64,000 nucleotides of DNA. It comes from Macrostomum lignano (Eukaryota). The DNA lies in NCBI GenBank assembly GCA_002269645.1, contig NIVC01001414.1, forward strand, positions 1 to 64,000, written 5' to 3'. Shown here piece after piece: positions 19,246 through 47,560 of the stretch; within the stretch, counting starts at the first letter, position 1, and every line of letters starts with the position of its first letter. Below the pieces are notes generated by a model. The model was given only the letters and a program-made list of their open reading frames with translations, did not search any database and was not told the origin of the DNA. Made by a program: the position numbers and the translations under genes.

Positions 19246-19261
19246 AATATTAAAATAAAAA

Positions 19262-25951: not shown

Positions 25952-26139
25952 TGTTTGCACTAATCTGATTCACCACAAAAAATAAGTTTCTAATTCGAAA
26001 TTCGCAATCAATAAATGGAGTTGGCTTGCAAAAAAATATTATTCTTTTTTGGAATTTTGTTTGCATCCGTTTTGCAAGAGAATCCGCAGTCGCGCACTGA
26101 CTGCTTTTAGTAGCCACGCACTGACATTGCGGCAGTTCT

Positions 26140-26310: not shown

Positions 26311-26311
26311 G

Positions 26312-26612
26312 CTGAGCTGAGACACCTGCGGCTGAGCTGAGACACCTGCGACTGAGCTGAGACACCTGCGGCTGAGCTGAGACACCTGCGACTGAGCTGA
26401 GACACCTGCGACTGAGCTGAGACACCTGCGACTGAGCTGAGACACCTGCGACTGAGCTGAGACACCTGCGACTGAGCTGAGACACCTGCGACTGAGCTGA
26501 GACACCTGCGACTGAGCTGAGACACCTGCGACTGAGCTGAGACACCTGCGACTGAGCTGAGACACCTGCGACTGAGCTGAGACACCTGCGACTGAGCTGA
26601 GACACCTGCGGC
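26312..26612. repeat. 20-bp VNTR GACTGAGCTGAGACACCTGC (~15 copies)
   Basis: Single copy in the paralogue near 42560. Confidence 0.95.
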
Positions 26613-26633
26613 TGACGGACTGAGCTTGCTGCC

Positions 26634-29600
26634 ATGGCAGAGCGAGGGAAGCCACCATTTCCTAACAAAAAAGTAAGTAAAGTTCAAGTAAGAAAACTAA
26701 AAGTATAATCATATTTGTAGTCTTGACTGCAGTTGCGGAAACTCACTCACATGTTTGAATGTGCAGCTTGGGTGCCACAATTGCAGTTGCAGGAACTCAC
26801 TCACATGTTTGAATGTGCAGCTTGGGTGCCTCAATTGCAGTTGCAGGAACTCACTCACATGTTTGAATGTGCAACTTGGGTGTCTCAATTGCAGTTGCAG
26901 GAACTCTCTGACATGTTTAAATGTGCAGCTTGGGTGCCTCAATTGCAGTTTCAGGAACTCACTCACATGTTTGAATGTGCAGCTTGGGTGCCTCAATTGC
27001 AGTTGCAGCAACTCACTCACATGTTTGAATGTGCAGCTCGGGTGCCTCAATTGCAGTGGCAGGAACTCACTCACATGTTTGAATGTGCAGCTTGGGTGCC
27101 TCAATTGCAGTTGCAGGAACTCACTCACATGTTTGAATGTGCAGCTTGGGTGCCTCAATTGCAGTTTCAGGAACTCACTCACATGTTTGAATGAGAAGCT
27201 TGAGTGCCTCAATTGCAGTTGCAGGAACTCACTCAGCCGGACCCCAGCAACCGGGCAAGCGTCGGATCCTCACCAGCCGATCTCCAGACTCTCGCTCACG
27301 ACGTCATCCAAGGTGACTTCGGCCAGGTGCGGCGGCTGGCAACGCGCCAGCTGGTCACCAGCGCTGATGCAGCTCGTCGGACCGTCCTCATGCTGGTGGC
27401 CGACGCTCCTGAGACTCCCGTGCACACTGAAAAGTGCATATTGTACTTATTTGAGCTGGGCGCGAACCCCAAGGCGGCTGACGCGAACGGCGACACGGCT
27501 GCGCACCTGGCAGCCCGGCGGGACCACCTGCGGCTGCTGACGCTGCTATCGTTCGATGCGAAGTGGCTGCGGAACGACAACGGCGCCACTCCGCTGATGG
27601 AGGCGGCGCGGACTGGAAGCTGGAGATGCGCCAAGCACCTGCTGCACCTGCTCAGGCAGAGAAGGTTTAACGAGTGCAAGGAGCACGAAAACTCGAAGAG
27701 ATCGCGGCTGCTCAGACTGAAGGATCGCGAGGGTCGGACGGCGTCAGACCTGGCGAGGCTCAGCGGCCACTCAGAGCTGGCCAGCTACATCGAGCGGTGA
27801 GTGAGCAGTTCGCTGCTGTGTCCATCAAGTTTTGCAGCATTCGGCTGGCTATGGTGGCCAGAGCTGCAGTCTCAGGCCAGCCAATCAGAGCCAGTCAGCT
27901 GAACTTGTCTCTGTCTGACTGCTTGATGGACGAGAGCTGTGATTGGCTGGCTGCCTCCTAGCCAATGGGGTGCCGGTTGATCTCAGTCGAGAATGGAAGC
28001 TGTAGGGCCTCGGTGTGCAGTGAGAGTGTGTAGGTTGAGCTGCAGATGGAGAACTGGGAGGCTGTGCGTGAGTGCTTTGTGAGACATTGTGAGATGGAAG
28101 GAAACTCATGCTGCAGAAATGGAAAAGAGCTGCGTGTGAGAAGTCGGATGCGCTCTCGCCAATGCTGATTGTTGCAGAGCTGCTGCAGTCTTCTTGGAAA
28201 CTCCATCTGCGAGCTGCTCAGATAATCAGGAAATTCAGTTATCTAAATTTATTACCAAAATTCTATTGTAGAACTATAAACTTTTTAATGGCTGTCAAAG
28301 TTGTAAAATTTTAGAAACATTTGCTGCTCATTTTGGCTGTTGCAGGGAGATGCGGCTGGTTGTGAGCAAAGGTGGCAGGATCTTCGGCCTGACAGCCCAG
28401 GTGAGCGGAATCTGCGGTGCCGATGCGGCTGCAGCTGAGCAGCTGTGCTCAAATTTCCCGCTCGCCTTTGCAGGAGGAGGCGGATCGACAGGAACTGCAG
28501 CAGCTGGCCGAGGCGGGCGACTCGGCGGGGCTGCGGCGAGCGGCGACCCGCGGCAGCTGCGACCTGCCTGACAGAGATGGTTACACCGCGTTGATGTTGG
28601 CAGCTCACAACAGCTCGTGCGGTGATGAGGCTCTGTGGGAGCAGCTGGTGCAGCTGGGTGATCCCACATGTGCTGATACACGGGCTGAAATTTGCCTGCA
28701 CCATGCAGCCGGACCTGGAAACTCTGCTGCAGCCTCCGCTCTGCTGGCTGCCGGAGCCTCCGCCAATGTCAGGGAAGATCTGTGTGACTTTACGCCCCTC
28801 ATGGCGGCAGCCTTTGCGCCCCCCACCACCGCCGCCGCATTCGGTCGGGTTCTGCTGGACTCAGGGGCGGATTGGAGCCTGAAGGACATGCCGGGCAGGA
28901 CTGCGCTGGATTTGGCCACACAGGAGGGAAAGAGCGAACTGGCTGAGCTGCTGCGTGGGTGAGTTTCCATGGCGACTGAGAATGTCTCTCTGACTTTGAT
29001 TTATCATTGATAAAAATTATGCTGTAATTTATGATTGAATATTGAGCAGCTGACTGCAGTTGCTCAGAGTGGGCATTTTTACATTTTTGTAGTTTAAATG
29101 GGCAGCAGACACTGACTGAGCTTCATTGAGGAAGTTTGCATAGGTAATTTAATTTAAAATTTAATTTCATAGGTAATTTAAGCAAAAGGAAGAAATGAAG
29201 CACAGAGCATGATCTTCAACCTGAATTCCTCTAACTTTAAACTCCGCACTGCCTACTTAGGTACGGCGGCAAGATTTACTTCAACGAGCCTCTGGCACTC
29301 CCGTGAGTTCCTTCAGCACACACAGCTACAGCACACACAGCTACAGCACACACAGCTACAGCACACACAGCTACAGCACACAGCTACAGCACACAGCTCC
29401 AGCACACACAGCTACAGCACACACAGCTACAGCACACACAGCTACAGCACACAGCTACAGCACACACAGCTACAGCACACAGCTACAGCACACACAGCTA
29501 CAGCACACAGCTACAGCACACACAGCTACAGCACACAGCTACAGCACACACAGCTACAGCACACAGCTACAGCACACACAGCTACAGCACACAGCTACAG

Positions 29601-30756
29601 CACACACAGCTACAGCACACAGCTACAGCACACACAGCTACAGCACACAGCTACAGCACACACAGCTACAGCACACAGCTACAGCACACACAGCTACAGC
29701 ACACAGCTACAGCACACACAGCTACAGCACACAGCTAGATCATGCTAATTATCCCTCATTGCCTCAATTCGCATCCCCTCAGCCCCCCGTTCCTGGAGCG
29801 CTGGGACAAAGTTCGCCTCATCGGTCGCGGAGGCTCTGGCAAAGTCCACGAAGTTCGAACTGACACGGGCGTCACATGCGCTGCCAAGACTCTCAAACTG
29901 CCTGTGCAGCTCGGTGATGACCAAACCCCTGTGAGCAAGGAGATCCACAGAGCTGTCGAGAGCGAGAGAAACCTGTGCCGACTGCGGCATCCCAACATCG
30001 TCAGGTTCTTGCACATCGCTCAGCCGAAGCCCGCCAAAGTCGTTGTGTTCATGGAGCTGCTGGACGGCCGAAGCTTGGAGAGGTTTATCGGCAACAAGCC
30101 GCTGGACGAGCCAAAGATTCGAGACTTCAGCGAGCAGGTGAGCATTGTGCATCCTTGATGCTCCTGTTCCATGTTTTCATGAATGATGACTGCTCACTGA
30201 CCGACCGCTCGCAGATCTGCAGCGCGCTGCTCTACCTGCACAGCCAGCAGCCGCCCGTGATCCACAGAGACATCAACTGCTCCAACATAATTGTTCGTGC
30301 TGACAAGACCCGAATCAAGCTGATCGACTTCGGCCTGTCAATTAAGCTGGAGCAGTCAGTCAGCCACATCTCAGGCTCCACTCCGTTTCCCAAAGGCACT
30401 CTGAACTTCATGGCGCCAGAGCTGCTCGGAGCGGGACAGTCGGAGAGCGACAGCGTGCAGTACAGCAGAGAGTCGGACATCTGGGCGTTCGCTGCTCGGT
30501 CTTCCAGATGGCGTCCGGCGCGAGGCCGTTCGCGAACGCCAGGAGCTTCTTAGAAATGGCCCAGCTGATCGACAGGAGGGGCGCCCCCGCCCTGCCGGAC
30601 GGCCGGTCCGCAGAGCTGCAGGACTTCTACAGCCGCTGCACCACCAAGGACCGCAGGAAGAGAAAGTCAGCAGGGGAGCTGCTGGAGCACGAGTTTCTGA
30701 CGGGTGGGAAGCTGAAAACGCGATTGCTGGGCTCGCTTTTCGGTGTAAGGAAATGA
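26634..30756 (+). CDS. Ankyrin-repeat Ser/Thr protein kinase. Exons 26634-26672, 27225-27796, 28346-28400, 28474-28958, 29783-30137, 30215-30756
   Basis: All introns GT-AG with consistent phases (0,2,0,2,0). Ankyrin motifs GDTAAHLAA, GATPLMEAA, GRTASDLA, GYTALMLAA, FTPLMAAA, GRTALDLA. Kinase GRGGSGKV, AAK, alphaC Glu, HRDIN, DFG, GTLNFMAPE, SDIW. One 1-nt deletion near 30491 (F[G]CSVFQMASG). Confidence 0.88.
26727..27235. repeat. 54-bp tandem array (~9 copies) that includes the exon-2 splice acceptor
   Basis: Unit TTGCAGTTGCAGGAACTCACTCACATGTTTGAATGTGCAGCTTGGGTGCCTCAA; single copy in the paralogue at 42750-42810. Confidence 0.93.
29321..29737. repeat. (CACAGCTACAG[CA])n 11/13-bp minisatellite in intron 4 of the ankyrin-kinase gene
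   Basis: Same unit as 45596-46204. Confidence 0.95.
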
Positions 30757-30937
30757 GAGAAACCGGTCAGAGCGCTCTTCGATGGCGAAAATGGCTACTT
30801 AGCTTAGATTTACCTTGGAACTCTCTGCAGTCAGCTTTGTATGAGCAATTTTTAGAAACTTTTTTCTTCACTAACATGATAATTCTACAAGATAGCCAGA
30901 AAACTGGCAGTGCCTGAGTTTTAAATTAGAAATTGCA

Positions 30938-31553
30938 AGAAGTAGACAAAGAGTAGACAAAGAGTAGACAAAGCGTAGACAAAGCGTAGACAAAGAGTAG
31001 ACAAATAGTAGACGGAGTAGACACGGGTAGACAAAGAGTAGACAAATAGTAGACAAAGAGTAGACAAAGAGTAGACAAAGAGTAGACAAAGAGTAGACAA
31101 AGAGTAGACAAAGAGTCGACAAATAGTAGACATAGAGTAGACAAAGAGTCGACAAATAGTAGACAAAGAGAAGAGAAAGAGTAGACAAAGCGTAGACAAA
31201 GAGTAGACAAATAGTAGACGGAGTAGACACGGGTAGACAAAGAGTAGACAAATAGTAGACAAAGAGTAGACAAAGAGTAGACAAAGAGTAGACAAAGAGT
31301 AGACAAAGAGTAGACAAAGAGTCGACAAATAGTAGACATAGAGTAGACAAAGAGTCGACAAATAGTAGACAAAGAGAAGAGAAAGAGTAGACAAAGCGTA
31401 GACAAAGAGTAGACAACTAGTAGACGGAGTAGACACGGGGTAGACAAAGAGTAGACAAAGAGTAGATAAAAAGTAGAGATAGAGTAGACAAAGAGTAGAC
31501 AAAGAGTAGACAAAGAGTAGATAAAGAGTAGAGAAAGAGTAGACAAAGAGTAG
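30938..31553. repeat. (AGTAGACAAAG)n 11-bp minisatellite just downstream of the kinase stop
   Basis: Tandem copies; explains the hydrophobic STLCLLFVY ORFs. Confidence 0.95.
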
Positions 31554-33148
31554 AGCTCTGCAAAGCTGAGTCAATTTTACTACAGTTTCAAATGGTACTG
31601 GTCAACCGAAAAGCATGTACTGTCTGGGTTGAAATTTCCAACCCAGAATTAAAGTGCACCCTGTCTCAGTTCAGATTAGAAAACCATAAACTGGCCTGCG
31701 AAACGATGAGGACTGCGAGACCAAAGATGCCTTAGGAGAACGGGACCTGCCCAAAGTGCCGTGTGGGGTGGAAATCGAAGTTCAGCTCCTGTTTTATAGT
31801 GCTCCCAGTGATAAACTTAAACAGAAAATCCTCAATAAAATGTTGAATTTTAACAATGCTAATTTCCTAATAAGTCTGGAAGATGAAGACACCGAAAACT
31901 CATCAGACAGAACGCAGCATCCCTGGGCCTTTATATCAGTACCAATAAAAACTGGCTCAAATACTCTGCGTATCATATTTTGATTTCTTTTCCGTAATGT
32001 AGAAGTTTTCATTCACTAACTGGAACAACTTGTGGTTATTTTTCAAAAATAATAGTATTACCACCAATAATAACAGTTTTCATGTGCAGATTGCACAGTT
32101 TGATTACTGAAGTTTCAATTGAGAATCCTCTGCTCAGCTCAATAGCTTTTTTCTGCTTGCCAAATTTTCTTTCCCCGTTGTCATGGAAACTACAGGCCGG
32201 TTGTTTGCTCTGACGATTTTGTTCTTTTGAGTTCTTGTTGGTTTGAATTTCCAGTTTTCTTCTCTGAGCTGAATTTGTAACACGCAATGCATGTGTTGGA
32301 CTGTTTATTTACTCAGATACTCCAGTTCCTGCTGATGCCATCTCACTGAGCTCACTGAGCAGCAATGCAAAACGGCAATTCAGATATTCGGAAACAAAGC
32401 ACTCATTATTTTCAACACTTAGCTGGGGTTTGCTCTAAGCCACGCAGCTACAGGACTCAAAAGCTGCGGACTGATGCAGAAGAGACGCTGGGAATTACAG
32501 AAATCTCACAAGAAATCCCGTATAGAATTAGAATTTCGGTGGGCGAGACTGCAAGATGGAGAGCAGAGGCTGGTCTTCAGTACAGCTCCATCCCCTGCCT
32601 CAGTCCCTGCTGCATCCATTCGGTCTGAACCCTCAGCTCAAATCTGCAGGCATAAAGTTAATCAGCTTCAGCCACGACTGAATTGTAGCACAGTGCAGGC
32701 TGGACAACTCTTGTGCCAGTAAGAGATGCAGTCAGATAAGCCATGGCAACTGTTTACAGTATTTTAATGCTGAAGCAATGGCTAAGCTGAACTGTGATTA
32801 CATAGCTGGCTGTGAGCGAACCATAAACATCATCAACTCTGCTTCTGCATCCTGTGCAGCCTCTCGGGTGCTTCACGCAGCTGCAGCGCCACTCGCTCTT
32901 CCGGTGGGCCGCTGCGGTCTGCCTTGTAGCGTTGCTGCCTCATCAGCCTCTGCAGATCGGGTCTGATCGGAATCTGAGTGCGCACCTGATGAAGCTCTGT
33001 GCGAGTCTGGGTGGCGACATGCATGCTGTGCAGCATGGCTCAGATGGCAAGCTGCCGGGTTAATTCGACATGATGTAGTTTCTGGTGCACAGACCTTTGC
33101 CAGAATTTAAATTTTCTAATGGTTAGAAAATCACGACCGTTAATACTA

Positions 33149-33985
33149 CTGACACATCACAGCTCACGATTTGCATGGGGACACTGAGTAGTCACTGCTG
33201 CTGACACATCACAGCTCACGATTTGCATGGGGACACTGAGTAGTCACTGCTGCTGACACATCACAGCTCACGATTTGCATGGGGACACTGAGTAGTCACT
33301 GCTCCTGACACATCACAGCTCACGATTTGCATGGGGACACTGAGTAGTCACTGCTGCTGACACATCACAGCTCACGATTTGCATGGGGACACTGAGTAGT
33401 CACTGCTCCTGACACATCACAGCTCACGATTTGCATGGGGACACTGAGTAGTCAGTGCTGCTGACACATCACAGCTCACGATTTGCATGGGGACACTGAG
33501 TAGTCACTGCTGCTGACACATCACAGCTCACGATTTGCATGGGGACACTGAGTAGTCAGTGCTGCTGACACATCACAGCTCACGATTTGCATGGGGACAC
33601 TGAGTAGTCACTGCTGCTGACACATCACAGCTCACGATTTGCATGGGGACACTGAGTAGTCACTGCTGCTGACACATCACAGCTCACGATTTGCATGGGG
33701 ACACTGAGTAGTCACTGCTGCTGACACATCACAGCTCACGATTTGCATGAAGACACTGAGTAGTCACTGCTGCTGACACATCACAGCTCACGATTTGCAT
33801 GGGACACTGAGTAGTCACTGCTGCTGACACATCACAGCTCACGATTTGCATGGGGACACTGAGTAGTCACTGCTGCTGACACATCACAGCTCACGATTTG
33901 CATGGGGACACTGAGTAGTCACTGCTGCTGACACATCACAGCTCACGATTTGCATGAGGACACTGAGTAGTCACTGATGCTGAGA
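33149..33985. repeat. 52-bp tandem repeat (~16 copies)
   Basis: GACACATC recurs at 33151 and 33203; copies nearly identical. Confidence 0.95.
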
Positions 33986-34023
33986 CACGAGTGCGCTAAT
34001 TCTCACTGCATTGGCTGGCATAT

Positions 34024-34958
34024 GGGCTGGATTGGTGAATGGGCTGGATTGGTGAATGGGCTTGATTGGTGAATGGGCTGGATTGGTGAATGGGCTTGAT
34101 TGGTGAATGGGCTGGATTGGTGAATGGGCTGGATTGGTGAATGGGCTGGATTGGTGAATGGGCTGGATTGGTGAATGAGCTGGCTTGGTGAATGGGTTGG
34201 CTTGGTGAATGGGCTGGATTGGTGAATGGGCTGGATTGGTGAATGGGCTGGATTGGTGAATGGGCTGGATTGGTGAATGGGCTGGATTGGTGAATAGGCT
34301 GGATTGGTGAATGGGCTGGCTTGGTGAATGGGCTGGATTGGTGAATGGGCTTGATTGGTGAATGTGCTGGATTGGTGAATGGGCTGGATTGGTGAATGGG
34401 CTGGATTGGTGAATGTGCTGGATTGGTGAATGGGCTGGATTGGTGAGTGGGCTGGATTGGTGAATTGGCTTGATTGGTGAATGGGCTGGATTGGTGAATG
34501 GGCTTGATTGGTGAATGGGCTGGATTGGTGAATGGGCTGGATTGGTGAATGGGCTGGATTAATGAATGGGCTGGATTGGTGAATGGGCTGGATTGGTGAA
34601 TGGGCTGGATTGGTGAATGGGCTGGATTGGTGAATGGGCTGGATTGGTGAATGGGCTGGATTGGTGAATAGGCTGGATTGGTGAATGGGCTGGCTTGGTG
34701 AATGGGCTGGCTTGGTGAATGGGCTGGATTGGTGAATGGGCTGGATTGGTGAATGGGCTGGATTGGTGAGTGGGCTGGATTGGTGAATGGGCTGGATTGG
34801 TGAATGGGCTGGATTGGTGAGTGGGCTGGATTGGTGAATGGGCTGGATTGGTGAATGGGCTGGATTGGTGAGTGGGCTGGATTGGTGAATGGGCTGGATT
34901 GGTGAGTGGGCTGGATTGGTGAATGGGCTGGATTGGTGAATGGGCTGGATTGGTGAAC
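34024..34958. repeat. 17-bp minisatellite GGGCTGGATTGGTGAAT
   Basis: Tandem copies; explains the NPAHSPIQPIHQSSPFT ORFs. Confidence 0.95.
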
Positions 34959-35879
34959 TGGCTGGCTCCCCTGTCAACGCAGTGGCTGAGTTCGCTAAGA
35001 ACCACGCAGGGCCCGAGAGAAACGGAAGAGTCGAGAGGAGGCGGCATTTCTGAGTCGCTGCAGAGGCCGAGCAGTCGTGAGCAGCACAGCGATGCTCAGC
35101 CAGCAGGCAACTCCAGCTGCTCAAAGCCCAGAATGCACCAGAATGCTCAACCGATCCATCTGCATAAAAAACCTGCAGTGACAACAAAATAAATCCATCA
35201 CATGCTACTCATAGGGTGAAGCGATTCGTGAGTAGTGCTCAAGTGCATTGCCATAGACATGTCCTGAGCTGCTTCTGAGCTGCATCTGCACAGCCGTGAG
35301 CACACAGAAGAGCGGCTATAATCTCTCTCGAATCTGCACTCTCGCACGAGGCCTCACCACAGGTGCAGAGCTCAACCAGCAGCAATGCGAGCGACACCAA
35401 GAAGTGCAGAGTTTCCAACAGAAGCTCTGCTTCTGCAGATCAACGGAAGGTGCGACGTCTCCCCCCCCCAAATGTAGGATGTCTAATAATGAGGCTGATG
35501 AGCATTTTGCAACCTGTTGCTGCCCAATTTGCTCAACTGTAATTGCTTATTGAGCTGCTTGTGACGCTAACTGCTTTTTGTCTGCTTAATATCAAAATCT
35601 AATGTAATTGTTTAATGTTTACTGTTCGATGTTTAAAATTAGTCTTCATTTTACTCCAGTAACTTTAATCTTGCTGTAAATAAGTGCATCCACAGATACT
35701 TTTATATTGTTATGTAGTCCTGTGCAAATTTCAGATACTATATTAAAACTACTACTTTTTTTATTCTTCACCTCAGGAGTAATATCTATGGCGTTTTATT
35801 TCGACTTTAGATAAGATAGCTGATTGAGAGGTTCAATGGTCTCTTTTGAATGCCAAATTTGTTAAATATCTCCTGCATT

Positions 35880-36762
35880 TACTAAGATTATCCAGTCTCT
35901 GTTCACTGAGATTATCCAGTCTCTGTTCACTGAGATTATCCTGTCTCTGTTCACTGAGATTATCCAGTCTCTATTCACTGAGATTATCCAGTCTCTGCTC
36001 ACTGAGATTATCCAGTCTCTATTCACTGAGATTATCCAGTATCTATTCACTGAGATTATCCAGTCTCTATTCACTGAGATTATCCAGTCTCTGTTCACTG
36101 AGATTATCCAGTATCTATTCACTGAGATTATCCAGTCTCTATTCACTGAGATTATCCAGTCTCTGTTCACTGAGATTATCCAGTCTCTATTCACTGAGAT
36201 TATTCAGTCTCTATTCACTGAGATTATCCAGTCTCTGTTCACTGAGATTATCCAGTCTCTATTCACTGAGATTATCCAGTTTCTGTTCACTGAAATTATC
36301 CAGTCTCTATTCACTGAGATTATCCAGTCTCTGTTCACTGAGATTATCCAGTCTCTGTTCACTGAGATTATCCAGTCTCTATTCACTGAGATTATCCAGT
36401 CTCTGTTCACTGAGATTATCCAGTCTCTATTCACTGAGATTATTCAGTCTCTATTCACTGAGATTATCCAGTCTCTGTTCACTGAGATTATCCAGTCTCT
36501 ATTCACTGAGATTATCCAGTTTCTGTTCACTGAGATTATCCAGTCTCTATTCACTGAGATTATCCAGTCTCTGTTCACTGAGATTATCCAGTCTCTGTTC
36601 ACTGAGATTATCCAGTCTCTATTCACTGAGATTATCCAGTTTCTGTTCACTGAGATTATCCAGTCTCTATTCACTGAGATTAACCAGTCTCTGTTCACTG
36701 AGATTATCCAGTCTCTGTTCACTGAGATTATTCAGTCTCTGTTCACTGAGATTATCCAGTCT
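35880..36762. repeat. 24-bp minisatellite TTCACTGAGATTATCCAGTCTCT(G/A)
   Basis: Tandem copies; explains the LRLSSLCS ORF. Confidence 0.95.
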
Positions 36763-38564
36763 CAGCGATGAAAAATTCCCCACTTGCTACCTTTAGTAGT
36801 ATCTGTAATGTAGTTGTGGAGGGAACTGCAACTGTGCTCACTGTGTACTGCAACTGCTCATTTTAATTTAATTTCATTTTATTTTATTGATTTATTTTTA
36901 CGCTAATATTTTATTTGTAAATTGAATTTAGGTAGTAAAAAGTTTTACAATTTCCGAATTAGCAGGGCCATCATTTTGATGGAGTCGGGGCTGAGCCCAA
37001 GCTCTAGGACAATATTCGGGATTTTTCAGGACCAGGAGCTCCTTCGGATCTTAGCTTTCTAATTTTCATTTATATGAGTATACCTGACTCAGTGTCCTCT
37101 CTGTCGTGGTCATCAGGGTCAGTGTCACCTGTCCCGGTGATAATACGCTCGTAGAGGCTCTGATAATGCTAGCATGAAGGCGAAATATTTATTCGGACTC
37201 AATGCATGCCCTTTCATTTCCGGATATAGATTGGAGTCCCTGTTGTGTGAGGCTGCATCTGAGCTTCATGGAAATCTTAAAATATTGAGTATGCAGTCTC
37301 CTCTTCAGCCTCATCTGAGGTTCCCTAGCTTGTATCTGAGGGCGTGGGGGAGGAGACGGGCTTGAGGGACTCAACCGTCATCTTTTTGATATTGACCCAG
37401 AATCTCCGGGGTTCCATGCTAACAACTATTTTTACATGAGTCTTCATAACGTCTATACCAGTGCATCCTAATGATGGAGTGGCTAGTTTTACAGATAGTA
37501 TGTGGAGCTAACTGCTTCCTGGATTTACGATCTGGGACAACTTCGGTAATTGTTTCGTGCATTTTCTCAATGAGTTTATCAATTACTATATTAATGGTAA
37601 TTGGGGAAAATATGGGAGCAGATAATGCTGCAATTTTCTATTTTACCCTGAAAGGCTTACCTAGTGGTTTCCAATTCGGTGTGCCAGAATCTCTTGGAAG
37701 GTATATTTGGGAGCCAATATGGAGCTGGGGTCTAAAATGACCCTCATGGTTATCGGGAGGTGGTGCTCACTGTCCGGGTCTTTACCGACTGAACAGGTTG
37801 GCTGCTCCGAGCCGGAAATTTTTCGTTTTCTCTGCGAATTGGTTGTAGCAGCGACTACTTAAAGTATTGCATGTATGGAATTTCCGCTGAAAATCCCTCA
37901 ATTCGGCTAATTCAGTGCAAGAATACCAATTTCATTTGGCAAAGTAGATCTGTCTGCAATTCTGCGATTTCATAATTATTATGAAATGCCCGACGGATCT
38001 GCAATAATTCTTTGGGATTATTTCATTCCATTTCTAAATCACCATGAGTTCAATAGCACGGGCAAGAAATGCTGCGTATGTAGATTCAACTGTATCCCGT
38101 GCTCAGCCATCTTAAAACTAGTTGCAATTTTAGTTGAACTCTAGCTAGTCTAGCTAAAACTAGTTACTCCTCCTGGCATCTTAAAGCAGTTGCAACAAAA
38201 CCTGAGAACATCTTGAATATGAATCCCAAATGAAGTATTTAGGCACATCATCACGATCGCACTTCAATTCACCCTCTACCCCTAACCCTTCTCTTCCTCT
38301 GCTATGGCTGGGGAGGCCTGCTATTTTTGTGGGAGGCGGAAAAACTGTGAGGGTATTACGCGATGTTTTTCGATGCTCCAATACCTGTTATCTTCTGCCA
38401 TCCAACAGCGGTGGAGGAAATGACAAGACCGGAGGAGGGGATATGCTTTTCTTTAATATTACCTTTCTAAATCTAAAACTAGCCGAGAAGCCGAGGCCAA
38501 TAAGTGGAGAAAAAATGTCTCTTTGGGCTTCCAGTTTGCGTATATTTATGAGCTCTACAATTTC

Positions 38565-38748
38565 CAGGAGCAGATCCAGAGACGGAGGGGGGGGGGGTAA
38601 GAGGCCATGCCCCCCCTCTCAGCCGCGGCCAAAAATTTTGGTCATACTTTTTTAGCCTGCTACTATGCCAGGTTTATTTTCCAATATGGGGTTGTAGTGC
38701 TTGGTATAGCTTGGCCCCCTTCTCAAAAAATTTCTGGATCCGCGCCTG
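38565..38748. mobile_element. hAT-type MITE (184 bp) with 8-bp TSD ACAATTTC
   Basis: Imperfect TIRs CAGGAGCAGATCCAGA / TCTGGATCCGCGCCTG; ACAATTTC at 38557-38564 and 38749-38756. Confidence 0.85.
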
Positions 38749-39379
38749 ACAATTTCATCCCCTGCCGCCGATGAGGTGGGGAACCGCTTTCCTATCGACG
38801 GCGGGGCTTACACAACACAGCGCATGCAATTAAACAGCACTAGACATGGCCGTAACTACGGGGGCGAAGGCTAGACGCTGAGACTTGGCGGATTACTCTG
38901 GTTGCGTTAAAGCATCTGGGGGAGCTCAGTTCACTGTCCTTCTGTGCGGGCCGGCCCACGCATCCACCCCTCGGTTGCCACGCTGGTCGGGGTTGGGCGT
39001 CTGTCCCGGGCCTGCCCGCAGCTCCTCCCCAGGAGCGGCCTCCGCTCTGGGCTCATTAAGAATTCTCCGGCCGGCCGTCTCCGCCTGTCAACCGTCAAGG
39101 TCAAATTGCCGCCTCGCCTTTGATCTCTGTCTGAAATTGATGGGAGCTGCTGTAGCTTTGCCATGCGCTGCGTGTGCTATTGTAGGCTCAGCCTATGCCC
39201 ATTTCTATTGTTCTGTCTTAATAATTTCTAAACCCTATAGAGGGGGTCGGGGCAGATGCAGGGACATAGAAGTAGCACCACTTGACTTGAAGCACAGACT
39301 AATAAGTATAAGCATGCTTCCAGCTCGCTGCTCTCTGTTGATTTACAAAATGCAGCGAAATCAACGTTGCGAGCTGCGG

Positions 39380-39742
39380 CTGCGGTGGCAGTCTTCCATT
39401 TCTTTTCAACTTTCTGCAGCAGATGGTCAGGGAACGCCGGGTAGATGGAAGGAACGGCATTTGGATTTTGAAGCTAGGCAGAAAGCCTGCAAATTTTTCT
39501 TTGAAGCAAGATTCCTCAAAACGCATTGAGCAGACTTGCGTGGATGGCGATGGCTCAGAATCTTTTCTTCTCAGCGCTATCAGCCACTTTTTTCTCATTT
39601 CCTCGTCCTTTGGAAAAGTATGAAAGGACACTCCCGCCAAAGACATTGCTGAGTTGTTCGAGCAGCCAACAGCGCAGCAAAAGCTGCCGTACTTTCCCTT
39701 TCTTTTTCTCGGCAATTTAGAAGATACAGGTTGTTCTTTCAT
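39380..39742 (-). pseudogene. THAP-domain ORF, probably a transposase-derived relic
   Basis: FCCAVGCSN...SFHTFPKDEEMRKKWL...VCSMRFEE (His to Arg). AVPSIYPAFPDHL is recoverable after a frameshift. No DDE core seen. Confidence 0.75.
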
Positions 39743-40224
39743 TTCGTTTTGAGCAACTATTAATTTTTAATAGCTTTGCTTAGCTGTTCAAAGTTAGTAT
39801 AGCATTGCTATTATGGTCCCCAAGCCACATTAATATACATGTATATTTAAAAAAGGGCAGAGTGCAGACAGCTGAAGAAGGGCCAGTCTTCCCCAGGCCA
39901 AAAATATCGATTGTTTTGGGCTGGGGAAGAGAGGACCATTTTTTGCTTTGTCATTTTGTCAAAAACGAGCCAAGGCAAGCAATGCTGGACGCGCTGTTTA
40001 GTAGTACTTATTGGTCTGTGATTAGCCAAGGAGTCCCTGCTTTAAGCCTCAGAATATTAAGTTGAAGTCGGGGCTACTGGATAAGGGATGGGGGTTGAGG
40101 TAGAGCAGGGAAGCAACACAAAGACAAACAAGTTGAAATTTACAAGGCATGAGCTCATGACGCCACGCTGATATACGCGCTTGTTTTATTTTCAGTGCTG
40201 TACAAATGAAGGAATTAGTCGACT

Positions 40225-40842
40225 GGGTCGCTTTCACAAACCCTAAATTTCACAACGTCGAAAACAAAACGCACCAGACTGCATAAACTATAAATTTCAC
40301 AAGTCCTAAATATCACAACGCCTAAAAACACTATGGTGATACAATCTTCTACAATCCTTCTGTATCCTATGTGTCGTGTGTTGCACGTGTTAGGAGTATT
40401 CGCGCTTGGCGAGACTGTGGGCGTAGCCACAGCCCTTTACAAGTATATATTTGAGTTTGTTCATAAACAATAGTGTATGCATGAATAAGAAACTAAAGCG
40501 TCTGGCTGCCACAGTTTGTACATGTATCGCCATAGTGTTTTTAGGCGTTGTGAAATTTAGGTCTTGTGAAATTTAGGTCTTGTGAAATTTAGGTCTTGTG
40601 AAATTTAGGGCTTGTGAAATTTAGGGCTTGTGAAATTTAGGGCTTGTGAAATTTAGGGCTTGTGAAATTTAGGGCTTGTGAAATTTAGGGCTTGTGAAAT
40701 TTAGGGCTTGTGAACTTTAGGTGATGTGCAATCTGCTACATTGCTTATTTTACACGTTGTGAAAATTAGGGTTTATGAAACATAGGTCTTATGAAAGGTT
40801 CTGGTTTCGAAGTAATGAAAATTAAGGTTTGTGAAACGACCC
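40225..40842. mobile_element. Foldback/MITE-like element built from a 16-bp subterminal repeat (TTGTGAAATTTAGG[G/T]C)
   Basis: Termini GGGTCGCTTTCACAAACC / GGTTTGTGAAACGACCC; inner inverted pair 40292-40343 and 40523-40574; ~10 tandem units at 40548-40715. No clear TSD. Confidence 0.65.
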
Positions 40843-42602
40843 TACCTTCCTGCCCCCATTTTTTCCTGCTCTGCCAAGCAGTGAAATAGGGAAATTTCAC
40901 AACGCCTAAAACAGGAAAATGCAGCCTCCTTCACATCGTCTAAATTTCATAACGCCTACAATCTTTGCAATTGCTTCTCTCTTTCACATTCAGTTGTGAA
41001 ATGAAATTTAGGTGATATGAAATTTAAGCGATGTGAAGTCATGTGCTTTAGACGTGAAATTTCACATTTAGGTGATGTGTAATCATGTACATGTGCTTTA
41101 AGCGTTGTGAAATTGTGTATAATCTTTTTTACAAATCAGTTGTTTTCGGATTTCTACGAAACATGTGCTGTTTTGGCATATAGAATTAAATTCAGCATTC
41201 GTTTAAATCCAAGTTTAAGGAATAATATTCCATTGGGGCTGCTCAGAAGATAGAGTTTGACTTTGAGCAGCTAGACTTTGCCTCCTATAGCACATTTTGA
41301 CCATTAATAGGGTTTGAGACAGACAGGGATCTAATGCACCTACCATGTACAGTTCCGAGTACAAAATGACAGCTGAGTAACGGACTTCTAAAAAGCAAAA
41401 TTAATTTGCCTGGGGTCGTACTGTGGTGTCTTTAACATTCCTTTCCGCTCACTGAGGCCACCTTCCCTCAGGTTCTCTTCAGAAACCCCTCGCTGTGTGT
41501 TCTAAGTCCCATTTGGTTCAAGGGGCCTTTCTTTGGCTTTTAGCCATGCAGTCATCATTCGCCGCCGCATGGGATTTTGTCAGCTTTTAGTTATTTATTG
41601 CCCCTCTTCATATTTTCTTGCATTGCTTTTTTTAGTCAAAAGCAGGGTTAATTTCTCGCTTTGTTGATTTACTCGTAGTTATACAAACCAACTCTTCCTC
41701 AAAGATAAATGTCACGTACAGGACAGGGAATTCCCGGGAGTCGACGGGGGCCCCGAATTAGTTTCCCGCCAGCCAATGAAACAATTCATTCCGTGAACCC
41801 AACTGTACATCTTTATATTCATGCTTTTTAAGTTTATGGTTCCTTTCGTTTAGGCCTTTTTATGCTGTTTTGCATGAATGTCTATGTCTCTGCCTCTTCA
41901 GAGACTATTTTCAGCCTCTTTTCTCTGAAATTTTCAGTTTCTACTGTTCACATAGACCTGCCCCACAATAGAGCTGACAATCTTTATCTCAGCATATCTG
42001 TGAGACTTAAGAAGAGCCTCAATGCTATTTCTGCCTAGAAACTGCGAAATAATCATGTTAATAAAAACTTTTCACACTCAATTACCAAGCATGCATCTAT
42101 GAGATTTCACATTTTCGAACTCATGGAGTTTACAGCCAGTGCAGTTGCGGCTTGCAGCACTATTTTTCGGTCAGAAATTTTGAGCAAAAGCAGCAGGCAG
42201 AGTAGAACACTTATTAACAATAATGTGCTCAAGCTGTTTATGTTTGCACTGATCTGACTTCACCGCAACACCGGAGTTGGCTTAAAAAGAGTATCATATT
42301 TACAATTTTAATTGCACCAATTTTACAAAAAATTCACAGTCGCACACTGAGTGCTTTAAGCAGCCATGCACTGTTTTTCAGCAGTTCTGCTGTTCCCTCA
42401 AAGCCAATGGGAGAGGCAGAAAGCTGGGCAGAGGCGGCCGCACAAGCCAGCAAAAGCAGCCGCAATCTGAGCAGGCAGGGTGAGAAGGAATTCGCTGCAG
42501 CTGCTCCAGAGCCAATAAAATCTGCTGCAGAGGCGACCGCTGCCCTGAGGACTCTCGGGCTGAGCTGAGACACCTGCGGCAGCCAGCACAGTGCGATTCA
42601 GC

Positions 42603-45600
42603 ATGTCAAGCGACTCAGAGGATTCTGATAAAGAAACACCATTTCCCGACGAAAAAGTAAGTCAAGAAAAAGTGAGAAAACTGAAGCACAATATTAACTT
42701 TACGCTTGATTGCAGTTTGCAGCTAGAACTGAAGTTTGAATTGATCTCAAACTCACATGTTTGAATGTGCAGCTTGGGTGATTTAAATTGCAGCTGCAGG
42801 AACTCACTCAGCCGGACTCCACCAACCGGGCAAGCGTCGGAGACTCACCAGCCGATCTCCACACTCTCGCCCACGCCGTTATCCGAGGTGACTTCGGCCA
42901 GGTGCGGCGGCTGGCAACGCGCCAGCTGGTCACCAGCGCTGATGCAGCTCGTCGGACCGTCCTCATGCAGGTGGCCGACGCTCCTGAGAGTCCCGTGCAC
43001 ACTGAAAAGTGCATCTTGTACTTATTTGAGCTGGGAGCGAACCTCAAGGCGGCTGACGCGAACGGCGACACGGCTGCGCACCTGGCAGCCCGGCGGGACC
43101 ACCTGCGGCTGCTGACGCTGCTGTCGTTCGATGCGAAGTGGCTGCGGAACGACAACGGCGCCACTCCGATGATGGAGGCGGCGCGGACTGGAAGCTGGAA
43201 ATGCGCCAAGCACCTGCTGCACCTGCTCAGACAGTACAGGTTCAATGAGTCCCAGAAGCACGGAAACTCGAAGAGGTCGCAGCTGCTCGGACTGAAGGAT
43301 CACGAGGGTCGGACGGCGTCGGACCTGGCGAGGCTCAGCAGCCACTCAGAGCTGGCCAGCTACATCCAGCGGTGAGTGCCTTTGTGCACCTGTCTGGGGC
43401 GTGTGAGAAGTCGGATGCGCTCTCGCCAATACTAGGCCATATGAATATAATGAGCAACTGCTCCAACTCAAGCATTTACTCGGGCCTGTATGAATAAACT
43501 GAGAAATTGTTGATGAGAAAATGCTCATGAGAATTTTCTCAAGAGAATTTGCTCCGATTTCAGAGCAAATAATACTCTGAAATGTACTGATCGTTGCAGA
43601 GCTGCAGCAGTCCTTTTGGAAACGCCACCTGAGTCGGAGCAATTGCTCAATCGTGAGAATGTTCTCTGAATCTGAGCAAGTGCTCATCGGGGGTATGAAT
43701 AAAGAATAAACTCAAACTCTGAGAATATTCTCCGTAGCTTGAGTAACTGATCAGAATGTTTTTGGCCAAGGCAAAAATCGTTCATACGGCTTCTTGCCGT
43801 TAGTACGGCTTTTTACGGCTTTTTAGGGTTTCTTACTTACGACTGCTTTTTCTCTCGCTTCTCAGAGCAAACTGGCTTAAAAGTTCAGAAGCAAGTTTTT
43901 GGCCACAAACAGAAAAAAGAGCCCATGCTCCAGAGTTTGAAAATCTCAAGAAAAGCTTAGTTTCAGTTTTCAGGAGTTTAGCTTTGACTGCTTCTATCAG
44001 ATTTTTACACTGCGACTCGTTCTTGAGTCTGCCAGGAGGCTGCCTCAACGTTGTCTCACGATTTCGCGGGCAAGACGGCAGATTCCGTGCCCGCTGTTTT
44101 AGTCTATGGCCAATCGTGAAACAACATAGTTCTGACTATGGATTTTCAGGCAGGAATTAGCTGAATCCTCGGGCTTCGCATTTTCTCTGAAATCGGAGCA
44201 AATTCTCTTAAAAAAATTCTCATGAAAAATTTCTCAGTTTATTCATACAGGCCCGAGTAAATGCTTGAGTTGGAGCAGTTGCTCATTTTATTCATATGGT
44301 CTAATTTGAAATTTCTGTTTACTAACTCATCATGAAAATTCTATTGTACACTTTACGCTCGTAAATTCAATTTTAGTGATTGCTGTAGTCGGATTTTAGA
44401 AAATTGAGAATTTGCTGCTCATTTTTATTATTGCAGGGAGATGCGGTTGCTTGTGGATGCAGATAATTCAATCTCCGGCCTGACAGACCAGGTGAGCGGC
44501 ATCTGCGGTGCCGATGCGGCTGCAGCTGAGCCGCTGTGCTCAATTTTCCCGATTGCCTTTGCAGGATGAGGCGGATCGACAGGAACTGCAGCGGCTGGCC
44601 GAGGCGGGCGACTCTGCGGGGCTGCGGCGAGCGGCGACCCGCGGCAGCTGCGACCTGCCTGACAGTAGGGGTTTCACCGCGTTGATGTGGGCAGCTGGGA
44701 ACAGCTCGTGCGGTGATGAGGCTCTGTGGAAGCAGCTGGTGAAGCTGGGTGACCCCGCCTGTGCAACAGAAACCTCTTTAAGCTGCCTGCATTTTTCTGC
44801 CGAGGCTGGCAATTCTGCCGCAGCCTCCGCTCTGCTGGCTGCCGGAGCCTCCGCCAATGCCATAGAGGCGGGGATGAGTGAATACACGCCCCTCATGCTG
44901 GCAGCCATTTCGGCGCCCCCCGCCACCGCTGCCGCAGTCGGTCGGGTTCTGCTGGACTCAGGGGCGGATTGGAGCATGATGAATTACGGCGGCATGACTG
45001 CGCCGGAATTCGCCACACTGCAGGAGGAAAAGAGTGAACTGGCTGAGCTGCTGCGTGGGTGAGTTTCCATGGCGACTGAGAATGTCTCTCTGACTTTGAT
45101 TTATCATTGATTAACATTATGCTGTAATTTATGATTGAATATTGAGCAGCTGACTGCAGTTGCTCTAAGTGGACATTTTTACATTTTTGTAGTTTAAATG
45201 GGCAGCAGGGACTGACTGAGCTGCATTGAGGGAGTTTGCAGTGCAGTTTGACTGCAGATTGCCAGTTGAATATTAATGTTCAGCTGCCTGCGAGCTGTGA
45301 GACACCAGCAAGCAGTTTGCTGCGACATTTGAGTTAAAAATTTAAATAGGCAATTTTCTGATGTTTAAAATCTATGATTGTAAACAAGCAATTACAAGCA
45401 ATTTTATTTAGTAATTTATTTAAAAAAATTGATGAAATTACCTACAGAGCATGAGTTCTCACCTGAATTCCCTTGAATTCAGACTCCACACTTCCTATTT
45501 AGGTGCGACAACAAGATATACTTCGACGAGCCTCTGGCACTGCCGTGAGTTCATTTGGCACATAAATATTTAGCTACAACAGACTAAAACAGCCAACACA

Positions 45601-47560
45601 GCTACAGCACACAGCTACAGCACACACAGCTACAGCACACAGCTACAGCACGCAGCTACAGCACGCAGCTACAGCACACAGCAACAGCACACAGCTACAG
45701 CACACACAGCTACAGCACACAGCTACAGCACGCAGCTACAGCACACAGCAACAGCACACAGCTACAGCACACAGCTACAGCACGCAGCTACAGCACACAG
45801 CAACAGCACACAGCTACAGCACACACAGCTACAGCACACAGCTACAGCACGCAGCTACAGCACGCAGCTACAGCACACAGCTACAGCACACAGCTACAGC
45901 ACGCAGCTACAGCACGCAGCTACAGCACACAGCAACAGCACACAGCTACAGCACACACAGCTACAGCACACACAGCTACAGCACACAGCTACAGCACGCA
46001 GCTACAGCACGCAGCTACAGCACACAGCTACAGCACACAGCTACAGCACGCAGCTACAGCACGCAGCTACAGCACACAGCTACAGCACACAGCTACAGCA
46101 CGCAGCTACAGCACGCAGCTACAGCACACAGCTACAGCACGCAGCTACAGCACGCAGCTACAGCACACAGCAACAGCACACAGCTACAGCACACACAGCT
46201 ACAGCCAGAAGAAGTGTTGTCATAGCACACACCGCTGAGAAAAATGCGAAGCTTTTCCAACCATTCCAGAGGACAAGTTGTCGCGGACCATGCTTATGAC
46301 GAGAAACTGAGTGACGATGAAGAAGATCCGTGAGTCAATGTTAATTGTGTCATGCAGAAACTGCTTAACAAATGTTCACTGATTAGTTAGAGCAATTGAA
46401 TGTTTCGTTATGTCAATTAAATACTTTTCAGAAACCTCAAAGGAGCCAAGTGTGTTAAGCAAGTTAGACATCAACTGTCAAGGTGCTTCTACATAATTTG
46501 CTTCTATAAATTTTGTGTTGTCAGTATAAAACCACATTGAGCATCTGCTGCATTCCAGGCACGAAGAAGATTTCTATCCAGTGACGAACCCGCAAGGCTA
46601 CTGCCTGATCATCAACATCAGCAAGTACGACTCTGGAAGTGATATCACACTCAGTCTTGCAGAGCGTCAAGGTTCAGATCGTGATGTTGACCGAGTGAAG
46701 CAGATATTCGAGAGGTTGCGCTTCATCGTCAAGATAAAAAAGGACCTCACTGCTGAGCAGTTGGATGATTTCCTCCATGAGATTAAAAAGTCACGGGACC
46801 TTGCCAAGCACGGCAGTTTTGTCTGCTTCTTGATGGCGCACGGCAGCCACGACTGCATCTACGGTAAGAACGGCGTGCCCTGCGAAATTCGAAACCTGAC
46901 GGAAAAGTTCAAGGTAAGCCACTATAGCTAATAATATCATGTTTGTTATTTTATGAGCGTATATAGGCAAGAACAGGGATATGAAAATTCCTAAGAATTC
47001 TTAAGAGTAGAAACCAATGATATTGAAACGAGAGTAATGTTTAGCCTGTTTTTCGTCTCTGCAAAAGGCTAGGCTAAACTGTACTCTTAGTTTATAAGGC
47101 CGAAGACTCCACTGCCAATACCATCGCATCACAGAGCTCTGTCTGCCGCAGCCTTGAAGGAAAGCCGAAGGTGTTCTTCATCCAGGCCTGTCGCGGCAGC
47201 CGTCGCGACCGAGCTGTTGCTCGGAGCTCTCGTGAGCAAACGGACGAGGCAGGCGCTCCGGTTTACAACTCCGCAATCCGCCCTGCAGAGGGCGACTTTC
47301 TGCTCTGCTACGCCACCACTCCAGGCTCAGCCGCCTTTAGAAACATCGACTCGGGCTCGCGGTACGTGCAGACTGTTTGCGAGTTCATCGAGAAGTACTT
47401 CCGTGAGCTCGACCTAATTACCATTATGACCAAGGTGAGCGGCTACTTGCACAAGAACCCGGTTCAGGTGAAAGGCGGCCTGTATCACGTTGTTCCGCAG
47501 AAAGTCGACCAGCTTTCAAGCCTGGTTAGCTTCGATCCAGATAGAGCTCGGAAAGCTTAG
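42603..47560 (+). CDS. Ankyrin-repeat caspase. Exons 42603-42656, 42800-43371, 44437-44491, 44565-45058, 46270-46329, 46559-46913, 47135 (or 47099)-47560
   Basis: GT-AG introns with consistent phases. Exons 1-4 are paralogous to the kinase gene. Caspase FYPVTNPQGYCLIIN, RQGSDRD, FLMAHG (His), GKPKVFFIQACRG (Cys), EGDFLLCYATTPGSAAFRN..GSRYVQ. Confidence 0.88.
43433..44303. mobile_element. Non-autonomous DNA transposon with long TIRs (>75 bp near-perfect, ~130 bp overall) in intron 2 of the ankyrin-caspase gene
   Basis: TAGGCCATATGAATATAATGAGCAACTGCTCCAACTCAAGCATTTACTCGGGCCTGTATGAATAAACTGAG is the reverse complement of 44230-44303; TA at both ends. Confidence 0.85.
45596..46204. repeat. (CACAGCTACAG/CGCAGCTACAG)n minisatellite in intron 4 of the ankyrin-caspase gene
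   Basis: Same family as 29321-29737. Confidence 0.95.

Follow-up and report, generated by a model that had tools for sequence, protein, structure and literature searches.

The window analysed here, i.e. the whole stretch of 64,000 nucleotides of contig NIVC01001414.1 of Macrostomum lignano, a flatworm with a free-living habit, contains two tandem paralogous genes on the + strand that have exons 1-4, encoding an ankyrin repeat (ANK) module, in common. The second ankyrin block of this module, encoded by exon 4 (28474-28958 in copy 1, 44565-45058 in copy 2), is hypervariable, and we are highly confident that diversifying selection acts on its binding face. The selected sites fall on nearly the same repeat positions that are randomised in the libraries of designed ankyrin repeat proteins (DARPins). 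After exon 4 the two genes part: copy 1 continues into a STE/MAP3K-like kinase and copy 2 into a caspase. Both genes belong to a multigene family that is specific to Macrostomum. The proposal as a whole, i.e. a Macrostomum family with a selected block-2 face that is fused to effectors and works as a sensor for them, seems to us, on balance, slightly favoured.

Variability between the two copies

An earlier note on this DNA described the second block as hypervariable next to a more constant one, and the figures of its hand alignment are borne out by the codon alignment. Exon 2 (27219-27796 in copy 1, 42794-43371 in copy 2), which had been put at about 89% identity with about 21 differences, is identical in 171 of 192 amino acids (89.1%, 21 differences) and in 93.9% of the nucleotides. 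Exon 4, which had been put at about 73% with about 44 differences, is identical in 120 of 161 amino acids (74.5%), has 3 indel codons in addition, i.e. 44 differences in 164 columns, and has a nucleotide identity of 84.5%. The nine peptides quoted in the note are all found on the + strand, within 28570-28959 in copy 1 and 44661-45059 in copy 2, and those of the outer helices, SAAASALLAAGASAN, GRVLLDSGADWS and ELAELLRG, are unchanged between the copies. The beginning of the following intron, said to be identical over about 50 nt, is indeed identical over 53 nt, and the next ~130 nt are ~95% identical. In exon 3 (55 nt) 10 of the 18 amino acids are identical between the copies.

The suggested clustering of the changes was examined with an a priori set of DARPin positions (x33, x2, x3, x5, x13 and x14; 24 codons). 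The clustering is real: 17 of the 24 DARPin codons differ between the two copies vs 24 of the 137 other exon-4 codons (Fisher p = 4e-7). Over whole exons the pairwise ratio of nonsynonymous to synonymous divergence (dN/dS, omega) is ~0.93 for exon 4 and ~0.73 for exon 2; in other words, omega > 1 emerges only from a partition of the sites or from a site model.

Codon-level tests of selection

Nine further exon-4 copies and their introns were collected from seven loci of the Mlig_3_7 assembly (GCA_002269645.1). Two of these copies, both at locus L006, are identical, so eight were used, giving 10 sequences together with the two window copies. In all 10 the exon-4 frame is open and its phase is preserved. 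Rates were compared over the 21 pairs among the seven closest paralogues. At the 24 DARPin codons the nonsynonymous p-distance is 0.476, at the other codons the nonsynonymous value is 0.100 and the synonymous value 0.094, and in introns 3 and 4 the distance is 0.061; the respective Jukes-Cantor (JC) values are 0.755, 0.107, 0.101 and 0.063. The check that the earlier note had proposed, exon-4 dN against intron divergence, thus comes out at 0.755 vs 0.063 in favour of its interpretation. A lower bound that does not depend on a tree shows the same tendency, i.e. at least 3.25 amino acid changes per DARPin codon vs 0.20 changes for an intron site and 0.24 for a fourfold site.

The site models M0, M1a and M2a were fitted with our own GY94/F3x4 likelihood code, and posteriors of the naive empirical Bayes (NEB) type were calculated for each codon. 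For exon 4 (10 sequences, 158 codons) the M0 model gives omega = 0.985. The log-likelihood (lnL) is -2730.3 under M1a and -2629.6 under M2a, so that M2a is preferred with a likelihood ratio test statistic (LRT) of 201.5 (p = 2e-44). M2a assigns omega = 10.7 to 12.2% of the codons, and 40-64% of the exon-4 sites have an omega of only 0.19-0.23. The preference for M2a is robust to the topology, as two random topologies give LRT values of 222 and 210, and the seven closest paralogues alone give LRT 220 with omega = 19.7.

Seventeen exon-4 sites have a posterior above 0.95. They are x2, x3, x5 and x13 in repeat A; x2, x3, x5, 10 and x13 in repeat B; x33, x2, x3, 4, 10 and x13 in repeat C; and x2 and x3 in the C-cap. 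In copy 1 the first bases of these codons are at positions 28573, 28576, 28582, 28606, 28678, 28681, 28687, 28702, 28711, 28774, 28780, 28783, 28786, 28804, 28813, 28888 and 28891. In the sequence register 14 of the 17 sites belong to the a priori DARPin set (Fisher p = 1.2e-11), and the rest are position 10 (twice) and position 4. Since a class of codons with omega > 1 is found and its sites are not scattered over the block, the interpretation given in the earlier note, i.e. diversifying selection on a ligand-binding module, stands.

Exon 2 served as a control. Here the M0 model gives omega = 0.447 and the LRT is 55, with 4% of the codons in the positive class; these codons are found at module positions 148 and 154, in the loop that follows LLRQ, and at the beta-turn of the fourth repeat. 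The note's description of the neighbouring block as more constant is therefore right in the relative sense (0.447 vs 0.985), but the block is not constant, as ~4% of its codons have omega > 1.

Variability across the family

The protein database contains 57 M. lignano relatives, whose C-terminal domain is a kinase, a caspase or not annotated. Outside the genus Macrostomum the protein database search found nothing closer than generic ANK proteins. Once near-identical models are collapsed, the public data hold at least 28 distinct variants of exon 4.

The column entropy in block 2 is 2.54 bits at the a priori DARPin columns vs 1.17 bits at the other exon-4 columns (Mann-Whitney p = 3.7e-9); the corresponding contrast is weak in block 1 (1.16 vs 0.84 bits). 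If the columns of the whole module are ranked by variability, 16 of the top 22 are block-2 positions 1, 2, 3, 5, 10, 13 or 14. The variability at position 14 is no more than moderate, and positions 10 and 4 come in addition to the DARPin set. The mean pairwise identity within the family is as low as 12% at the selected sites, compared to 62% at the other exon-4 sites and 71% in exon 2. It is also conspicuous that W, Y and F make up 16.7% of the residues at the selected sites vs 3.3% elsewhere (odds ratio 5.9, p = 2e-25). Protein-binding hot spots are typically rich in these residues.

In each of the four repeats, almost all distinct members differ from the others in their signature. A few signatures are common to several members in a mosaic-like manner, for example KDRDG in repeat D. 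Cassette shuffling was considered, and we do not claim it: the signatures in the protein-level table are mostly unique and the common ones are too few.

Fold and repeat register

The ANK module of copy 1, in translation, is 100% identical to a UniRef protein of M. lignano (here P0001; 671 aa, annotated as 'Protein kinase domain-containing protein'). P0001 belongs to the ankyrin superfamily (Pfam clan CL0465), with matches to Ank_2 (2.7e-26), Ank_4 (4.6e-17) and Ank (4.9e-17), all above the curated cut-offs. An AlphaFold2 (AF2) model of the 373-aa module, built from a family alignment of 36 sequences, has a predicted local distance difference test (pLDDT) score of 92.7 and a predicted template modelling (pTM) score of 0.90. 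It consists of two stacks of helix pairs with a periodicity of ~33-36 residues, joined by a short beta-hairpin that is encoded by exon 3. The best Foldseek matches in the PDB are rigid DARPin-DARPin fusions, tankyrase ankyrin repeat clusters (ARCs) and ankyrin-1/2, with probability 1.0.

Residues 8-160 of exon 4 align with residues 18-165 of DARPin D12, i.e. with its N-cap, three repeats and C-cap (phmmer/HMMER), and this end-to-end alignment fixes the repeat register. The residues flanking the T-x-L-x-x-A-A motif then correspond to the DARPin library positions 45/46/48/56/57, 78/79/81/89/90, 111/112/114/122/123 and 144/145/147. In DARPins these positions belong to the beta-turns and to the short helices after them, and they line the concave face (PMC10484509).

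Exon 3 (28346-28400 in copy 1, 44437-44491 in copy 2; 18 codons) shows a separate peak of variability. With 2.7-3.2 bits, the tip of its hairpin (module positions 201-204) ranks with the family's most variable columns. The hairpin may extend the binding surface.

Gene structures and the tandem duplication

Comparison of the window with itself shows that 26017-29745 and 42273-46205 are a tandem segmental duplication on the + strand. In copy 1 a conserved upstream or 5' non-coding segment (26017-26332, 88% identical to 42273-42580) is followed by the start-codon exon at 26634-26672 (MAERGKPPFPNKK, donor GTAAGT), the encoded N-terminus of which has homologues in the database models P0006 and P0002. 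Exon 2, 100% identical to P0001 and encoding the four repeats of ANK block 1, exon 3, the linker with the hypervariable tip, and exon 4, which encodes block 2 with its N-cap, three repeats and C-cap, follow at the positions given above. The 5' part of intron 4 (28959-29140) is ~95% identical to copy 2 and ~94% identical among the 7 paralogues and was used as a neutral yardstick; further downstream the intron contains a minisatellite (29311-29745). The last two exons encode the kinase, i.e. exon 5 (29783-30137) the N-lobe with GxGxxG and the AAK lysine, and the last exon (30215-30756) the C-lobe with HRD, DFG and APE.

In copy 2 the start-codon exon is at 42603-42656 (MSSDSEDSDKETPFPDEK), exons 2-4 follow as in copy 1, and the intron-4 minisatellite is at 45572-46205. 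Next come a candidate cassette exon (46270-46329; 60 nt, in frame), which is skipped in the database model P0086, and the two caspase exons. The first of these, at 46559-46913, encodes the large subunit with the catalytic His in FLMAHG, and the second, at 47135-47560, encodes QACRG and the small subunit and includes the stop codon. The resulting 7-exon model has AG/GT at all junctions and an open coding sequence of 2022 nt.

A conserved ATG at 26158/42407 (MGEAESW...) was tried as the start and rejected, as the phase of its donor never joins the frame of exon 2 with any acceptor. We have taken the upstream block as 5' non-coding sequence or an upstream open reading frame (uORF). Within this block 26147-26241 and 42396-42490 are 100% identical between the paralogues, a conservation beyond that of any coding exon; the ATG-initiated ORF in it, MGEAESWAEAAAQASKSSRNLSRQ, has an MGxxxS start and no in-frame splice to exon 2. 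The identical block may be a 5' untranslated exon, a uORF or a promoter element.

The introns differ in their repeat content. Intron 1 of copy 1 contains a 54-bp tandem repeat (26720-27235, ~9 copies, 93% identical) that reiterates the acceptor region of exon 2 (AATTGCAGTTGCAGGAACTCACTCA), which provides many potential alternative acceptors; copy 2 has a single unit of it. A pair of inverted repeats (43433-43570 and 44180-44303, 85.5% identical) is located within intron 2 of copy 2, the remainder of which has no relation to this intron in the other paralogues; this looks like a miniature inverted-repeat transposable element (MITE)-type or other foreign insertion. The idea that conservation is confined to the intron beside exon 4 had to be dropped, since other paralogues match copy 1 in intron 2 at 89-96% identity; among the introns 2 compared, a foreign insert with inverted repeats interrupts that of copy 2 only.

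Effector domains and the intronic minisatellite

The kinase of copy 1 matches Pfam Pkinase (1.2e-48). The motifs GxGxxG, AAK lysine, HRD, DFG and APE are all kept, as read in the sequence of P0001, and among the best 60 chains the closest solved relatives are of the STE group, i.e. MAP2K5, ASK1/MAP3K5, MAP3K2 and PAK. In the window, 30476-30500 of the kinase exon reads GCGTTCGCTGCTCGG, compared to GCGTTCGGCTGCTCGG in five paralogues and DIWAFGCSVF in P0001. The lack of a single G at ~30491 puts the DxWxxG region out of frame, and a stop is reached at ~30551. The deletion may be a real mutation that turns the gene into a pseudogene, it may distinguish haplotypes, or it may be an assembly error at a homopolymer.

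The caspase of copy 2 matches Peptidase_C14 (1.7e-45), and both FLMAHG, with the catalytic His, and QACRG are kept. The database protein P0086 is 100% identical to window copy 2, and in this protein the end of exon 4 is followed immediately by the caspase exon, so that the ANK-caspase fusion does not depend on our own gene model. We note that P0086, annotated as 'Caspase-3-like', starts at an internal Met of copy 2 exon 4. The proteins P0002 and P0006 had been candidates for a third, 'ANK-only' architecture. This was rejected, because tblastn finds kinase exons downstream of both loci and the C terminus of P0006 is an out-of-frame translation of copy-1 kinase exon 5; the 'ANK-only' models are thus truncated or mis-framed. 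In other words, several public models ('ANK-only', 'Caspase-3-like'; loci L001 and L002) are cut-down versions of sensor-effector fusions. No signal peptide is present in the proteins, and the MGxxxS start of some members is myristoylation-like.

Homology between the two window genes ends inside the minisatellite of intron 4 (CACAGCTACAGCACA...). The same minisatellite is found directly upstream of the first effector exon at every family locus examined, whether this encodes a kinase or a caspase (L002, 12332-12847; L003, 7344-8166; L006, to 11724; L001, to 50665). The pattern fits one sensor module that was shuffled by exon onto alternative effectors, and a part for the minisatellite in this is what its position suggests; it is possibly a recombination substrate for the swapping of effectors.

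Proposed mechanism and alternative explanations

The mechanism that we propose assigns different tasks to the two blocks. Block 1 (exon 2) would probably bind a shared partner or make a contact within the molecule. Block 2 (exon 4) would be a self-contained five-repeat unit with a framework and flanking introns that stay near-identical between paralogues, and its positions 2, 3, 5, 10, 13 and 33, in the beta-turn and inner helix of the presumed concave face, would have been replaced repeatedly under strong diversifying selection, so that each paralogue would carry a different, aromatic-rich 'paratope'. Spliced across the minisatellite-bearing intron to the STE/MAP3K-like Ser/Thr kinase in copy 1 or to the caspase in copy 2, such a block would bind a variable, fast-evolving protein ligand, most plausibly one made by a pathogen, by a virus or transposon, or a polymorphic product of self or mate. 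Binding would recruit or cluster the attached enzyme, i.e. activate it by proximity, and lead to cell death or stress signalling. The result would be a germline-encoded recognition repertoire that needs neither a NACHT domain nor a death-fold adaptor. We give even chances to a mechanism in which a sensor triggers an effector in this manner, and a specifically immune role is a tentative suggestion.

Several points weigh against this proposal. The site models (M1a/M2a with NEB posteriors) are our own implementation and not that of PAML or HyPhy, and the DNA-level sample consists of only 10 genomic exon-4 copies. The sites are placed on the concave face by the DARPin register and PMC10484509, not by measured coordinates. 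With its 1-nt frameshift in the kinase exon, copy 1 of the window may be non-functional or mis-assembled. The roles as a sensor and in immunity are purely what we infer, and Macrostomum has many fast-evolving reproduction-related genes. Finally, the neighbour-joining (NJ) tree of the paralogues is star-like with internal branches of at most 0.006, the introns are 89-96% identical even between paralogues on separate contigs, the synonymous p-distance (pS) is raised at the hypervariable codons (0.37 vs 0.09 elsewhere), and in repeat B of copy 2 adjacent synonymous sites differ too. Together these four observations make gene conversion or recombination likely, and recombination among paralogues inflates site-model tests.

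The same four observations support an alternative in which concerted evolution is combined with balancing retention. Conversion would homogenise the introns and the framework, old and diverged hypervariable codons would be shielded by selection, and omega would overstate the rate of new adaptive change. Repeat B of copy 2, with its neighbouring synonymous changes, resembles an imported tract, and the mosaic sharing of signatures such as KDRDG points in the same direction. However, the framework codons between the hypervariable ones (G4, T6, L8, A11, A12) keep their synonymous sites, which conversion tracts would not respect, and selection for diversity at the same surface would still be required, so that this scenario alters the tempo and leaves the conclusion of the earlier note as it was. 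Although gene conversion probably contributes to the highly conserved framework and introns, we are doubtful about the full scenario. That selection for surface diversity is real, whatever its tempo, is indicated by the codon-precise variation, by the agreement of the tree-free bound with the intron comparison, and by the match to sites chosen a priori. The target of this selection could also be another one: the variable ANK face may steer the kinase or caspase to endogenous substrates, or it may take part in sexual or germline conflict, with no recognition of pathogens. ANK prodomains are general protein-protein adaptors, the flatworm ANK-caspases have been proposed to be initiators that are recruited by an unknown activator (2024 lophotrochozoan apoptosis study, PMC11463336), and the lack of a signal peptide and the myristoylation-like MGxxxS start of some members would agree with it. 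Endogenous substrates, on the other hand, rarely drive omega to 10 or more at 12% of the codons and residue identity down to 12% over at least 28 paralogues, and we think this alternative unlikely.

Two further explanations concern the origin of the variation itself. A whole-exon omega of ~1, the frameshift in the kinase exon of copy 1, and the collapsed or duplicated haplotypes of M. lignano assemblies, of which the two identical copies at L006 are an example, might suggest relaxed constraint, pseudogene decay, or an assembly or allele artefact of a polyploid, repeat-rich genome. But every one of the 10 exon-4 copies is open with its phase preserved, the framework codons and 40-64% of the sites, with omega 0.19-0.23, indicate strong constraint outside the hypervariable sites, and the changes cluster at positions predicted to be on the surface (p = 1e-11). 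Moreover, the two window copies share one contig and have different effector domains, hence they are not alleles. Decay or artefact is thus effectively excluded. The sharp confinement of the variability to particular codons beside invariant flanks would also be expected if targeted mutagenesis, similar to diversity-generating retroelements (DGR) or to somatic hypermutation, wrote the codon diversity in place of selection on ordinary mutations. Yet each germline copy has a fixed sequence of its own, the substitutions involve all bases and all three codon positions, and neither a template repeat nor a nearby reverse transcriptase was seen in the window, the mobile genes of which are a Polinton-like element and a copia gag only. 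We know of no such system in animal germlines, and this explanation appears extremely improbable.

If the sensor-effector proposal is correct, a sensor fused directly to its caspase or MAP3K-like kinase points to a circuit with very few steps between sensor and effector, and the family would be a concrete starting point for work on innate immunity or genetic conflict in flatworms, both poorly understood so far. As RNA interference (RNAi) and transgenesis are possible in M. lignano, the proposal is directly testable. One may go further and see here a new class of animal intracellular receptors, in which tens of DARPin-like ANK paratopes are fused to a caspase or MAP3K-like kinase without a NACHT, death-fold or TIR adaptor, the combinations arise by recombination at the minisatellite, and the ligand sets off death or stress signalling against pathogens, viruses and mobile elements. 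In this extended form the idea is speculative, and we would rather expect parts of it to fail.

Other elements in the window

The window has an exceptional density of long tandem-repeat arrays, e.g. at 2800-3190, 4044-5016, 6034-6832, 8356-8922, 12342-13288, 33146-33987, 34022-34965, 35877-36763 and 55647-56354. Some repeat units are common to distant arrays (10532-10879, 12310-13294, 56738-57226 and 63590-64000). Upstream of the ANK genes, long ORFs of a Polinton/Maverick-like element occupy 18205-24170 on the + strand, with matches to an rve integrase (5.6e-9) and a protein-primed DNA polymerase B (1.2e-16); the polymerase ORF includes an Endonuclease_7-like stretch just below the curated cut-off, and there is a weak match to an adenovirus-type protease. 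Two direct repeats of 158 bp (13753-13908 and 25794-25951, 98% identical) flank ~12 kb that include this element and could mark where a larger mobile element, or else a duplication, ends. A THAP-domain ORF (39302-39766, - strand, 3.1e-14) is located between the two ANK genes. Downstream of them there are a copia-type gag fragment (52461-52850, + strand, 9.2e-31) and exons of a kinesin motor gene (53611-58089, - strand), the latter recognised in the ORF translations by the motifs GVTSSGKTFT, SSRSHALFSI, DLAGSER and LLTLRRCVETL.

Comparison with known systems

Snake-venom phospholipases A2 (PLA2) and conotoxins are families of accelerated evolution in which introns are more conserved than exons. 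The flatworm genes are similar in that introns and framework are 90-96% identical and specific codons are near saturation. However, those proteins are secreted toxins, whereas the flatworm proteins are cytosolic repeat proteins fused to signalling enzymes.

Other ANK-containing kinases have a different organisation. ILK has an N-terminal ANK domain and a C-terminal TKL pseudokinase, and in RIPK4/ANKK1 and DAPK the kinase is N-terminal to ANK. In the flatworm family the order is ANK and then kinase, the catalytic motifs are kept and the relatives are of the STE group; no ILK, RIPK or DAPK chain is among the best 60 kinase chains listed. ILK, RIPK4/ANKK1 and DAPK are thus ruled out by domain order and kinase group.

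Copy 2 resembles the platyhelminth ANK-caspases, such as those of Schistosoma, in its domain content, i.e. an ANK pro-domain N-terminal to a caspase with the catalytic His and QACRG (PMC11463336). These proteins have been described as characteristic of parasitic flatworms, and M. lignano was mentioned only for a caspase with a kinase-like pro-domain (Genome Biol Evol 2024, PMC11463336). The present genes extend ANK-caspases to a free-living flatworm. They differ in that the same paper reports no hypervariability, multigene expansion or kinase-bearing sister genes, and in our caspase search only Macrostomum proteins were found above 31% identity.

Fungal proteins of the NLR/STAND type (nucleotide-binding receptors and signal transduction ATPases with numerous domains) may have hypervariable ANK repeats, as well as TPR and WD repeats (Dyrka et al. 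2014, PMC4986451). As in the flatworm family, the positions under diversifying selection are in the inner helix and beta-hairpin of the concave ANK face, the framework is highly conserved, which suggests concerted evolution, and the association with effectors is combinatorial (PMC4986451). In contrast, the fungal proteins have a central NACHT/NB-ARC NTPase, and their diversity is found between the repeats and alleles of one locus with polymorphism of the repeat number. In the flatworm the repeat number is fixed and the diversity is between dispersed and tandem paralogues, in an animal. No NTPase family appeared in the Pfam scan of P0001 or in the precomputed Pfam domains of the 57 family members; without a NACHT/NB-ARC domain the family is not an NLR family. 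Diversified repertoires of repeat proteins are already known from leucine-rich repeats (LRRs) in plant and animal NLRs and in the variable lymphocyte receptors (VLRs) of lampreys, and from the ANK, TPR and WD repeats of fungal NLRs. Literature searches for the Macrostomum family returned the general ANK-caspase paper and the fungal NLR work only, with no prior description of it. ANK-caspases and positively selected ANK surfaces (in fungal NLRs) were known before, and this animal family adds a further variant.

A close parallel is an engineered one. As in the N3C libraries of the Binz/Pluckthun design, exon 4 encodes an N-cap, three internal repeats and a C-cap, and DARPins are the best PDB matches of the module both by sequence and by fold. 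The natural hypervariability is at repeat positions 2, 3, 5 and 13, and partly 14 and 33, which are the library positions 45/46/48/56/57 and their equivalents (PMC10484509). The differences are that the flatworm module is natural and germline-encoded, that position 10 of the inner helix is hypervariable here and unrandomised in DARPin libraries, that the flatworm repeats carry 34-36-residue insertions in helix 2, and that a second, conserved ANK block precedes the module and an enzyme is fused to it. The likeness is one of functional analogy and not of homology by descent. Nevertheless, if our reading of the selected face is right, the family would be a natural counterpart of DARPins, with an ankyrin surface diversified in an animal at almost the very positions that protein engineers selected, and the concave ANK face would be able to serve as a general-purpose paratope in vivo.

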